Positions 49,460 to 61,899 of a DNA stretch of 64,000 nucleotides are shown piece by piece. Both the position numbers and the translations under genes were made by a program. Positions within the stretch are counted from its first letter, which is position 1. Each line of letters starts with the position of its first letter. The notes beneath the pieces were generated by a model, which did not search any database, had not been told where the DNA came from, and was given only the letters and a program-made list of their open reading frames with translations. This DNA is from Pocillopora damicornis. Taxonomy: Eukaryota. Where the stretch lies: positions 1 through 64,000 of the forward strand of contig NW_020847220.1 of the NCBI RefSeq assembly GCF_003704095.1, in the 5' to 3' direction.

Positions 49460-52400
49460 TCACGGCATGATGTGAAAGACTTTGGTGTCTTTGCTGTTCT
49501 TTCTGTGCTTTTCACATACCCAAATGACGCCAAACCCTTCGCGATATTCCTGTCGCAACCCGCCGAAGTTGTCTTTGGTTCCTAGCTTTAACAGAACTTC
49601 TCGCAAGTATTCATAATGTTCACCACCCAGTTGATAGCCGCGGAATGCACCTGATACGCCAGTTAGCCCTTTGGGTTGCGGAATGGAACCCGATGATTCC
49701 TCAACAGTCTTGAGGAAACCGTCCATCTGTGTGTAAGATAGGTAACGTAGGCTTTTGGATTTTGGTATATTGGAACACATTTCTTTAAACGTCGTAAAAA
49801 TAAAACATAGAAAAACATCACAACGAACAAATAATCACACCAACTGAAGCGGAGAAGACGCGAGTAACGAGTAACGTTTGCTTAACGAGGTATATATATG
49901 TGATGAAGAAGTTTCGTAGATGTCGTTGATTTTAAAAGTCAATGCATATCACAAACCTCTTTGAAGACATTCTTCCATCGAACTCCAGAAAGCACAGCTC
50001 CACCAAGGCCTATTGTGCCCAGGACAGTGTTCAGAGTTTCTTCCACATCAAAGAGGGTTGCAGCGATGCTCGCCACAGAGGAAATGTTGATGAGAAGCTG
50101 AAAAGAGGAAAATATTGGCGAACTATGGTTAACGTTGAAAAAGAGACAAGAGTGAATTTAGAATTCCAAGAATTAACGCTATAACACTCCGAATCAATTC
50201 GTGTCGATGTTGCCCACAAACGGTCTGCAAGAAATTTACCTGCAAAGAAAAGCGCAAAAAATTAACGCTTTTCTTGATGAGATCAGCAGCTACCATACTC
50301 TCTAGTCTGTATCCTTCATGCTTGCTGGAGTCCAGAAAATGTACCCCACTACCGTCTCCGTTTCCTTCACAAAGCAGAAACAACCGATATTTTGGCTGAC
50401 CAAAGGTGAGAAGCTTTTTTATCGCGTTCAATTTCAAAACAGAGGAGCGATTCCGGAATTCTGGCAGAAGGCAAATGGTTCGTGGAACATCGTACTACGG
50501 AAAGTGATACAGACATGTCAGAAAACGAGAAAGAGAAAAGTGTTCCTATGTCAAGTTCGTGCCACATTCAAATTAAACAAACCGCCACAGAAACTGTCGA
50601 GGCCGAGAGTAGACAGTAATATGGCGATTTCATATTTTGGGCGCAAACGAAATCAAGTGTGGAGACAACAGCAGCTCTGTTTTCAAAACATGCAGATTAA
50701 CATCACAATTCAAAATCTGAAACACCTCCACGACACCAGCAAGCTCTAATAGAGAGCATGAATTACAGAGAGATAAGATTGGAATTCCTTAGCTAGGGAA
50801 CACAGTCAAATTGTCTATAAAATATACTTACATGAAAGTACCAAGTCTTTTGTCTATTATCCCTGCTAAAATGGTTATGATTCTTTGATTACCCGCTTCC
50901 CTCCTAGTGACTGTCCTCCTCAGTTCTAATGGGCAAAAGCCTTATGTTCGTACTTTCTCTTCGGCAATTCAAGACGAAGACTTAGCAAAAATCTGTCATA
51001 TTGATCACCAGTGCTAAACGCTATTCTTACATTTTTCATGTCCATGAAGACTTTTGTCAAGTCGTTAATCCTTTCTCTGATCTCTCTCAGCAGTTTTGCT
51101 TCATGTTTGTCAACGCGATCACCAAGGTACTTCATCAGGGGACGCGTCAGAGTGTTAGGATCATTAAGCTTACGGTACGGGTCACCTGCTTTGTTAAAAA
51201 CAAGTTGATGAGTGAAAAACTCAGAACGAGTTTGAGTGTTTAATAATTTGATTTTGGCGTCTTTCTTCTCCATCCATAATGAACTTTGCAAGTTGAACCA
51301 AGTTTTATTTCTTTCCAACGCAACAACGATCCATAGTTGAATTTTGTTCACTTTTCGCCCTTGAAACATGCACAAAAACAAGGTCCAAGGCCATCCTCAA
51401 CAGGCCAACAGTATCCTTTATATGTTTTTTTCTGGAAATCTACAGGAAAAAGACCCCCTATGCTTTAAGTTGTGGACGTGATTATGATTCAAATTTCAGC
51501 TCTGGAGGTCACGCAAGACTAGTAAACTCACACAGGTCAGGGTAAGTGAGTATTGGTCTCTAAGTTTCTACCTACCGGTTCCATTTAAAGAATGCCATTC
51601 CAAAACTGGAATCAACTGCGTATCTTTGAATCCATTTAACATGTCACTGATGGTAGATTTTTTGTCATAACATCTTTCACAATGACACCTGTCCACGCCA
51701 CGTGCTGTTTCCTCTTGTAGAAAGGACAAATCAAAATAATGTTGCTGACAGGCACTACAAGACACCTTGATCTCACAAAAGCCAGGTAAATTCGCAAGGC
51801 ATGTTTTCATGAAACGTACTGTTGCTTCTGCACCTGCCCTGCAGACATCTTGGCTGTGTGCCCGCACTGTCACTCTTACCTCCATGACAGTTTTGTTGAC
51901 AAAACAAGGCCCGCAGTCAATACGACAGTCATACTGATCGTCCACGTAGATAACCAGAGAATATTTCCCCACAATCACTTGACTATATTCTTGCAGAATG
52001 TTTGCAACGAGGTCATGGAAATTGGAATAGACAAGATAAGGCGGCACCTTAAACACCAAATGTCTGTAGATGGTGTATTTGGACTCCTCTACCGGAGGCC
52101 AATTCTTTTCTGTGATAGATTTTGAAGTCAGGTGCGGAATAATGTAAACTGCACCTCCATCTCTTGTCTCAACAGCCACTCGCTTTTCAATTAAAAAGTT
52201 GACAATGTGTTGTTTTGTCGAGTCTGGGGAATTAAAACGGATGAAAAAGACGTTCATGAGAACCCCAAGGAGTTACAAGAACACTTAAAATATCTCTAGA
52301 GACAACTTTGTATTATAGAAATACTAATTCTGGGAGTGTCTGGTGCCTCGAAAAAGGCTTTATGCTTATTAACATAAATAGTTAATTCCTCCTCCCACGC

Positions 52401-61400: not shown

Positions 61401-61899
61401 ATTTGCGACCACCATACAGTTTGCTTATATTTCAATGGTATGTATGACATGTCAACAATCTTGATTCGCTAGTCAGTGGTCCGTTAAGGCTTCATGATCT
61501 CCCACAGAATGTGTCGAAGTAGAATCTCTTTTTATGCGACCAGAATTTCAAACTGCCAGGCTTCTATATACTGCCGAAAGTTATAGGTAACAGCAAAATT
61601 ACGGAGCTACCGTGTCATAAAGCCATCGAAACTTTATTTAGTCACAAAAGAAAACAGACGGATGCTTCAATGATTTCAATATGTTATTGAATCAAGTTGT
61701 TTACGCTATTCCGGAAGCGTAATTCAGTTTCTTTTATGCACCATCGATGCTTCGATGAATATACAATGTCATACAACAGAAACTCTTGATACATAAAGAA
61801 TTTGAAAAGGCCAAACTAACTTCAGGTAACAGATGCTGAAAATGCTGCAGTTTATGAACACCTACCCCAATTTCCTGCTTGACCGTGTGCAGACATCAT
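49460..61899 (-). CDS. Multidomain protein: Rab-like GTPase - RCC1 repeats - filamin/Ig repeat - degenerate Roc - COR (~1998 aa). Exons 61899-61866, 60343-59596, 59167-58962, 57871-57387, 56977-56466, 55262-54362, 53989-52690, 52223-51576, 51359-50954, 50676-50583, 50494-50240, 50097-49957, 49726-49460
   Basis: Twelve GT-AG introns with matching phases give a 5997-nt ORF. GDVSVGKT/DTSGK/TKTD/TSAL; RCC1 repeats (CGSAFT..GKVFSCG..GKLGHG, AGGDHA, AGRKHS..GEVYTCGNNAFGQLG, CGADHL..GQLG); GSFKVSITRNGKNLFGSPF; Roc-like IYVYVWD..LNFWL..VILL; COR motifs LRPHWL, YIIPHL, VPRTICLLP, YRLFLLCE..H..GYRL, FGGL..WVCEKH. Confidence 0.78.
55344..55622. mobile_element. PLE-derived element with inverted pair of hammerhead motifs
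   Basis: Palindrome gtttcgagcgttagcccttcgtc-agagtgaac-gacgaagggctaacgctcgaaac (55430-55484); 12-bp direct repeat CGATAGTTAAAG at 55344-55355 and 55611-55622. Confidence 0.8.
58005..58357. mobile_element. Hairpin non-autonomous element in an intron
   Basis: Arms ttccctcgagtcctgatgtttcccgag / ctcgggaaacatcaggactcgagggaa around GACGAAGTC; architecture like 34404-34698. Confidence 0.7.
60969..61113. mobile_element. Short MITE
   Basis: Terminal inverted repeats cagtggcggatc / gatccgccttg with G/C-run interior. Confidence 0.55.

Follow-up and report, generated by a model that had tools for sequence, protein, structure and literature searches.

Does the minus strand of this 64,000-nucleotide stretch of Pocillopora damicornis DNA (contig NW_020847220.1, positions 1 to 64,000; hereafter the window) encode one protein in which a small GTPase, RCC1 repeats, a filamin-type domain and the Roc-COR tandem of ROCO proteins stand in a single chain, as a preliminary description of the locus had proposed? 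We approached this question with RNA contigs and with searches and fold models, the latter two run exon by exon rather than with the joined spliced protein as query. The order that emerges is a Rab-like G domain, a linker, about 13 RCC1 repeats, a probable filamin-type immunoglobulin (Ig) domain, a pseudo-Roc, COR-A, COR-B and a C-terminal domain of about 280 amino acids (aa). We consider it probable that this is an expressed, single-copy, ROCO-derived gene of the stated layout, whose product would combine a scaffold with a switch.

RNA evidence for a single transcript

Between 49460 and 61914, the minus strand holds a run of long stop-free stretches whose frames change and whose borders carry GT/AG signals, pointing to a spliced gene. 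Sequence and phase arithmetic resolve this region into 12 exons (E1 to E12), all compatible in phase and without stops, for a predicted protein of 1,884-1,946 aa, the range being set by the choice of start codon and of E9 acceptor. Counted from the ATG at 61899, the coding length is 5,826 nucleotides (nt) with the long form of E9 and 5,655 nt with the short form. The proposal that scattered open reading frame (ORF) fragments splice in consistent phase into one ORF thus holds, since the phases fit, no stops intervene and E2-E7 are found in RNA. The 13 exons and 5,997 nt originally given for that ORF have to be revised to the figures above, a thirteenth exon or the extra 171 nt having been looked for at the locus and not found.

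Evidence for one transcript comes from contigs of polyA RNA from four runs in four independent studies, aligned to window positions 53890-59889. The joints 59596/59167 (E2/E3), 57387/56977 (E4/E5), 56466/55262 (E5/E6) and 54362/53989 (E6/E7) each appear in all four runs, and the joint 58962/57871 (E3/E4) in three; all five read CT..AC on the plus strand, that is, GT..AG on the minus strand. One contig of 3,464 nt (X13) passes consecutively through the Rab exon and E3-E6 into the start of E7, and the lengths of its pieces leave no space for extra exons between E2 and E7. Because this contig runs from the Rab exon through to the filamin/Roc exon, both exons belong to one gene, and the TAA lying 2 nt past the E2 donor (59592-59594) is intronic. 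The preliminary description had itself raised the prospect that the Rab exons end as a gene of their own; the RNA instead joins E2-E7 as expected of a single polypeptide, and two junctions that had been singled out for checking, 59596/59167 and 58962/57871, are proven by these contigs. More broadly, at least six studies contribute polyA RNA-seq runs, labelled coral or marine metagenome, that each contain about 45% of the stretch's sampled words, a proportion that fits exons making up less than half of the locus.

At the 5' end, contig X13 continues for 268 nt upstream of E2, and the E1/E2 joint itself is predicted from sequence. E1 (61866..61914, minus strand, as for all exons below), also read from the sequence, offers in-frame ATGs at 61914, 61899 and 61896 and a phase 1 donor (GGG/gtaggt); its ATG-to-donor block is 81% identical in the corresponding locus of another coral (L010, a 207-kb contig of a different sample), with the donor kept. 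Upstream of E1, window positions 62097-62314 form a 218-bp block with 83% identity to L010 8129-8345, which is probably a 5' untranslated region or core promoter, or else an element shared with a divergent neighbouring gene.

The Rab-like G domain

E2 (59596..60343) encodes a Rab-like small GTPase domain (approximately 59817-60343) and a conserved 75-aa linker (59596-59816). In Pfam it matches Ras (1.4e-21) and Roc (1.5e-13); against PDB sequences the best matches are Ypt6, Rab5, Ypt7 and Rab6 at about 5e-13, with the best 60 matches all being Rab or Ypt proteins, and among named sequences Rab21 comes closest, at 33% identity. The exon carries G1 (GDVSVGKT), the switch-I Thr, G3 in the form DTSGK (no Gln), G4 (TKTD) and G5 (TSAL). 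Across 29 orthologous E2 ORFs (52-98% identity), G1 is present in every one and G4 (TKxD) and G5 in 28 each, and wherever DxxG was located (27 of these 29 orthologues) it is followed by K, R, N or S and in no case by Q. Judged by these motifs, the phosphate- and guanine-binding parts of the nucleotide pocket look intact, and nucleotide binding is predicted.

Other Rab hallmarks are missing or altered. The RabF/RabSF signatures look degenerate by eye, and there is no prenylation tail, with no terminal CC or CxC in the exon and with the domain lying internally, joined in RNA to the RCC1 exons. The domain had been described simply as a Rab GTPase: that it belongs to the Ras superfamily and lies nearest the Rabs stands, whereas full Rab identity does not, given 33% identity to Rab21, no prenylation tail and no catalytic Gln, and on its sequence "Rab-like" is the accurate term. 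The last residues of E2 (F-x-W-G-T-W) resemble the first RCC1-type strand (F-x-W-G), and this exon end is conserved in the 29 orthologues.

The RCC1 region

The RCC1-like region begins in E3 (58962..59167; 76% identity in L010) and extends through E4 (57387..57871), E5 (56466..56977) and E6 (54362..55262) to the start of E7. RNA joints flank E3, E4 and E5 at both ends, and the E6/E7 joint likewise found in RNA, 54362/53989, restores the repeat motif NGK/VYFWG. Pfam RCC1 (PF00415) scores 95.7 bits in E5, the region's strongest signal, 39.5 in E4 and 36.7 in E6, against a cut-off of 21.7. For E4 this corresponds to 8.7e-10 (with the RCC1-like domain WD40_RLD at 3.4e-15) and for E5 to 2.4e-27 in 3 stretches; E6, whose middle part is less regular, matches RCC1_2 at 2.5e-14. 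PDB matches of E5 are led by UVR8 (5e-35), followed by the RCC1-like domains (RLDs) of HERC1 and HERC2, RPGR and RCC1. Well above cut-off in E4-E6, and with about 13 repeat motifs counted by eye across six exons, the RCC1 repeats that had been noticed from the letters alone are borne out, and their number makes it probable that the region folds into two propellers.

The probable filamin-type Ig domain and the pseudo-Roc

The first part of E7 (53456..53989) completes the last RCC1 strand and then encodes the probable filamin-type Ig domain. Exon residues 1-115 are modelled with a predicted local distance difference test score (pLDDT) below 50, and residues 116-178 (window 53456-53644) as a filamin-type beta-sandwich with a pLDDT of only 50-67. 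Matched to PDB, the E7 family profile finds gelation factor (1.1e-4) and filamin A/B/C, and Foldseek places the modelled domain with the TRIM3 filamin domain (root-mean-square deviation (rmsd) 2.2 over 65 columns) and also with filamin A/B.

The middle of E7 (52979..53446; exon residues 182-337) encodes a Roc-derived pseudo-GTPase. Its AlphaFold2 (AF2) model has a pLDDT of 80-94 at residues 187-333, and the best 21 Foldseek matches of the E7 model are all Roco, LRRK1 or LRRK2 structures; by VIA-align it superposes on LRRK2 Roc 1330-1517 with Z 12.7 and rmsd 3.5 over 151 residues. The same family profile that matched filamins also matches LRRK1 (1.4e-5), LRRK2 Roc and Chlorobium tepidum RocCOR in PDB. 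A search of 1.84 billion representative proteins with E7 returned 27 matches, comprising exon-sized ORFs of relatives, filamin-repeat proteins that match query residues 170-224 and true ROCOs that match residues 269-458; among relatives it found exon-sized ORFs only, and no full-length one. Three of the true ROCOs (P0018, P0025 and P0027) were matched by phmmer, and Pfam reads the ROCO matches as leucine-rich repeat (LRR)-Roc-COR-A-COR-B, kinase-Roc-COR and a Roc-COR-A fragment.

Aligned with true ROCOs, the coral Roc has a 4-residue deletion between strand 1 and helix 1, exactly where ROCOs carry GxGKS, and G3 (DxxGQ) and G4 (T/N-K/H-x-D) are degenerate, so that the G1-G5 set of a GTP-binding Roc is not found here. 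The ROCO-typical block Y-x-V-W-D...F-W-L...A-x-x-A-x-V-I-L-L is kept. With the P-loop deleted, GTP binding by Roc is not expected, and on its motifs the domain is a pseudo-GTPase predicted not to bind GTP. The deletion is common to all homologues, including those at 27-30% identity, which indicates that the pseudo-GTPase state is old and stable.

COR-A and COR-B

The end of E7 (52690..52978; exon residues 338-433) encodes the winged-helix part of COR-A, and E8 (51576..52223) the end of COR-A together with COR-B. Residues 182-412 of the E7 model align to LRRK1 634-923 and LRRK2 1330-1603 with VIA-align Z of about 13 across Roc and COR-A, and the profile aligns residues 122-316 to the C. tepidum RocCOR structure 3dpu. 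For E8, the best 30 Foldseek matches of the model are all COR structures (3dpt at E 2.8e-6, TMq 0.58), with VIA-align Z of 11.6 over 175-179 residues for 3dpu/3dpt, 10.6 for LRRK1 and about 10 for LRRK2. As modelled, then, the Roc fold is followed directly by COR, and the likeness of the E8 model to the COR of C. tepidum, LRRK1 and LRRK2 places both COR-A and COR-B in the chain. By fold and sequence together, the Roc-COR unit is ROCO-derived, and the pseudo-Roc-COR of the preliminary description—a Roc fold recognised by profile and structure, its P-loop deleted, with COR present—is upheld.

E8 ends in a tail with four invariant Cys at exon residues 155, 158, 181 and 184 (CxxC...CxxC, window 51670-51759), conserved down to 27% identity and a possible zinc site. 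Comparing the E8 profile with true ROCO P0025 by hhalign gave a weak alignment (E 0.076) to the P0025 COR-B, which puts the CxxC...CxxC on the COR-B tail of that true ROCO.

A conserved C-terminal domain

The earlier account of the locus made no mention of the conserved domain of about 280 aa that E9-E12 encode at the C-terminus. Within this domain, E10 (50240..50494) forms the core and is the best-conserved exon; 27 exon ORFs match it at 66-94% identity and two other loci, L001 and L010, at 74-79%, with the invariant motif K-Y-R-L-F-L-L-C-E-G-N-G-D-G-x-G-V-H at window 50340-50400. Pfam, PADLOC and NCBIfam hold no credible match to E9-E12, and the ESM Atlas nothing for E10 (best score 0.75). 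Marginal matches of E10, at E 0.02 in Pfam and E 0.15 by PDB profile, lie in cysteine dioxygenase at cupin motif 1 (K-F-x-L-M-I-L-C-W-G-E-G-H-G-S-S-I-H), which the E10 motif resembles, with the second metal-binding His missing; we treat this cupin likeness as a lead only.

Two flanking exons complete the C-terminus, both read from the sequence. E11 (49957..50097) encodes two short hydrophobic Gly-rich helices as a hairpin; its splice sites are kept in L010, where its identity is 62-71%. E12 (49460..49726) closes with the TGA stop (49460-49462) and has a G-L...W-V-C-x-x-H motif that is conserved; it shows 31% identity over 54 aa to a distant homologue (L006), in which the ORF stops at the equivalent point. 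E9 (51031..51359) has conserved coding only in 51031-51188, and its acceptor is either 51359 or the NAGNAG pair 51188/51185, both choices preserving the downstream frame. The longer frame is interrupted by a stop in L010, where the alignment covers exon residues 47-109 only; because of this stop, and because only the part from 51188 is conserved, sequence comparison favours 51188/51185 over 51359, the acceptor in the third junction that had been singled out for checking (51576/51359). The E7 donor at 52690 was placed by inference and is conserved in L010.

Conservation and homologues

Only one copy of the gene is present in its own 234-Mb genome, and E2-E11 are colinear in L010 at 58-79% identity. 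Codon comparison with L010 shows a gene under purifying selection: the ratio of nonsynonymous to synonymous substitution rates (dN/dS) lies at 0.13-0.46 in 8 of 10 aligned exons (E2 0.23, E7 0.28, E8 0.20), E6 and E9 not being computable owing to an in-frame stop in the L010 segment. Two further loci present a Ras ORF, then RCC1 ORFs, then 292-aa ORFs, on one strand, and in five assemblies Rab-exon and exon-10 ORFs sit on same-sized contigs.

A more distant homologue (L006-L008) has the linker exon, RCC1, pseudo-Roc, COR and C-terminal exons. In its sample (ERZ25073755; L006-L009) the E4-E5-E6' RCC1 unit is tandemly duplicated, and the unit is copied again on a third contig beside long minus-strand ORFs (774, 519 and 231 aa) that could be a transposon. 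A PF10508-carrying gene adjoins the distant homologue in L007, on the opposite side from the gene that neighbours the coral locus at window 44643-47117.

How the parts may work together

How would such a chain function? COR-B is the dimer interface in ROCOs, from which the idea of Roc-COR as a scaffold derives (PMC6337361). By analogy to COR-B of the C. tepidum Roco and the LRRKs, the dead Roc and COR would form a fixed, probably dimeric scaffold, with the nucleotide switch moved to the N-terminal Rab-like domain. Adjacency in the chain suggests cis action of the RCC1 propellers on the Rab-like domain or together with it, be it as docking platform or as exchange factor, and an output role for the C-terminal domain. 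The most specific version of this scheme, in which Roc is retired and the Rab-like domain is loaded in cis by its own RCC1 region, making a GTPase-guanine nucleotide exchange factor (GEF) module on a COR dimer that drives a C-terminal effector, we regard as doubtful.

Several observations weigh against the scaffold-and-switch reading or parts of it. Pfam Filamin falls below its 26.9-bit cut-off, with 14.4 bits (E 0.07) here and 24.2 (6e-5) in homologue P0003; Pfam COR-A is marginal and below its curated cut-off (E 0.08 here, 1.5e-4 in P0003), and Pfam COR-B has no match in E8. The E7-to-E12 joints derive from splice consensus, phase and the same borders in two other species, and the E9 acceptor is ambiguous. 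In one RNA run (X1) the E2/E3 joint is present and the E3/E4 joint is not; the main contig instead leaves E4 for intron 3 and extends as far as a dispersed repeat, a pattern that could reflect intron retention or an internally started isoform. The distant homologue yielded no Rab G domain when the 7.9 kb upstream of its linker exon, an interval bounded by a neighbouring gene, were searched by tblastn and by a family hidden Markov model with filters off; the G domain may therefore be dispensable, and not essential to the family. UVR8, HERC and RPGR, the proteins to which E5 is closest, are mostly binding platforms, not exchange factors. Finally, nucleotide binding, dimerisation and GEF activity enter the scheme as predictions from motifs and analogy. 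A two-copy prediction of E8 (COR-B) scored 0.00, which speaks neither for dimerisation nor against it.

The same layout may obey another logic. The RCC1 propellers would then serve as platforms for binding rather than for exchange, and the Rab-like domain, lacking its Gln, would be an interaction or targeting module that hydrolyses slowly and is GTP-bound most of the time, with no self-contained GEF-GTPase cycle. E5 matches UVR8, HERC1/2 and RPGR ahead of RCC1 itself, Q never follows DxxG where the motif was located, and the distant homologue retains the propellers with no G domain found; yet exchange activity would be compatible with the same repeats, the conservation of G1, G4 and G5 together with a Rab-exon dN/dS of 0.23 implies that nucleotide binding matters, and the Rab-like domain and RCC1 region are directly adjacent with a conserved linker in common. 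We judge this alternative quite possible, if a little short of an even chance. A different concern is whether there is one gene at all: a Rab-like GTPase could end at the TAA at 59592-59594 next to a separate RCC1-ROCO gene, the joined RNA being read-through or an assembly chimera. The stop 2 nt beyond the E2 donor and the X1 contig that runs from E4 into intron 3 speak for such a division, which is nonetheless largely refuted by GT..AG joints 59596/59167 in all four runs and 58962/57871 in three, by one contig covering E2-E7, by a Rab exon that lacks a prenylation tail and ends in an RCC1-type strand conserved in 29 orthologues, and by an exon order conserved in other species; we consider it highly improbable.

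The protein might also be an innate-immune or stress sensor, with propellers and Ig domain as ligand sensors and the C-terminal domain, through its hydrophobic hairpin, as a death or membrane effector. Brown-algal ROCOs, described as candidate immune receptors (PMC11378527, PMC3341825), offer a precedent, and E11 is indeed hydrophobic and Gly-rich, in a C-terminal domain without a family match. Against this, the gene is single copy, purifying selection acts on all of its parts, none of which shows signs of diversifying, and neither PADLOC matches nor Pfam matches to death-fold, TIR or NACHT domains were found, leaving the sensor role unlikely. Weighed together, the evidence keeps us with the ROCO-derived gene of the stated layout acting as scaffold and switch as the probable reading.

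Other features of the locus

Two introns contain repeats that are prominent in the RNA contigs. In each of the four runs, contig depth over window positions 55290-55690 (intron 5) climbs into the thousands and joints of the "opposite strands" kind occur; the interval includes a 43-nt inverted repeat (55410-55452 / 55462-55504, 91% complementary); the element looks like a dispersed, highly represented hairpin of the miniature inverted-repeat transposable element (MITE) type. A second dispersed repeat lies in intron 3 (58090-58290), with a contig depth of 80-150, and it is here that the X1 contig, having passed 57871, reaches 58173.

A 7,988-nt contig of run X1 was considered as a sign of more 3' coding exons and dropped, since unstranded contigs can merge the 3' ends of convergent genes; a convergent neighbour lies on the plus strand at 44643-47117, and merged 3' ends may explain the contig. 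The first exon of this neighbour we take, by reading alone, to resemble 26S proteasome subunit PSMD5. Rfam identified no RNA family in the gene, and two runs of 100 N (35741-35840 and 41246-41345), assembly gaps or masked sequence, lie outside it.

Relation to known systems

Interest in ROCO proteins comes mainly from LRRK2 and Parkinson's disease, where the crosstalk among Roc GTPase, COR dimer and Rab is still debated. The coral gene amounts to a natural experiment in this respect, with a COR scaffold under selection even though its Roc is predicted to be nucleotide-free, and with Rab-like and RCC1 parts in the same chain. If the parts cooperate, COR would have a role independent of a Roc GTP cycle, the protein would offer a compact system for GTPase-regulator coupling, and animal ROCO topologies would extend beyond the LRRK, MFHAS1 and DAPK1 types; if they do not, this would be one more lineage-specific domain shuffle.

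ROCO proteins have been sorted into three topologies: LRR-RocCOR, LRR-RocCOR-kinase and the DAPK type (PMC6337361). No exon of the coral gene has a Pfam match to an LRR, kinase, ankyrin or death domain, in keeping with the first impression that LRR and kinase are missing, and the layout fits none of the three groups. The protein accordingly departs from the ROCO family on two counts, in lacking a Roc expected to bind GTP and in standing outside these topologies. A full-text literature search turned up no account of a ROCO that contains RCC1 or Rab parts, which, together with the position outside the topologies of PMC6337361, agrees with the original remark that no described protein of this architecture was known. 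A database entry under an uninformative name likely exists, annotated cnidarian proteomes not having been queried full-length; an entry is not a description.

Among characterised proteins, LRRK1 and LRRK2 share with the coral protein a Roc fold directly followed by COR-A and COR-B, provide its best profile and fold matches, and have in common with it the block Y-x-V-W-(D/N)...F-W-L...A-P-x-A-x-V-(I/L)-L-V. Unlike them, the coral protein was found to have no ankyrin, LRR, kinase or WD40 parts, its Roc P-loop is deleted, it adds an N-terminal Rab-like G domain, RCC1 repeats and a probable Ig domain, and a different C-terminal domain follows COR. The Rocos of Chlorobium tepidum and Methanosarcina barkeri (3dpu, 3dpt, 6hlu, 4wnr) are the top structural matches of the coral Roc-COR-A and COR-B models; these prokaryotic LRR-Roc-COR proteins differ in having an active Roc and LRRs, and the COR-B dimer that has been shown for them is predicted by analogy for the coral protein. 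Like the coral protein, MFHAS1/MASL1 and DAPK1 carry a Roc-COR tandem within a larger multidomain protein; to our knowledge both lack RCC1 repeats and a further G domain, and neither has a dead Roc. Their layouts are LRR-RocCOR for MFHAS1 and kinase-ankyrin-RocCOR-death domain for DAPK1 (PMC6337361, in part as generally understood).

The N-terminal half invites comparison with other families. UVR8, HERC1/2, RPGR, RCC1 and alsin have RCC1 repeats like those of the coral protein, with UVR8, HERC and RPGR being the best PDB matches; in the coral protein, in contrast to these RLD proteins, about 13 repeats stand between a G domain and a ROCO unit, with no HECT, BTB, DH-PH or VPS9 partner. The large Rabs CRACR2A/Rab46, Rab44 and RASEF/Rab45 also place a Rab G domain in a long multidomain protein, there C-terminal and prenylated, whereas the coral Rab-like domain is N-terminal and internal, without a Cys tail and without the catalytic Gln. 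Pseudo-GTPases such as that of p190RhoGAP keep the G-domain fold, have lost nucleotide motifs and are used as scaffolds; what distinguishes the coral protein from this type is that its predicted pseudo-GTPase is a Roc still in tandem with its native partner COR, and that it comes together with another, apparently active G domain.

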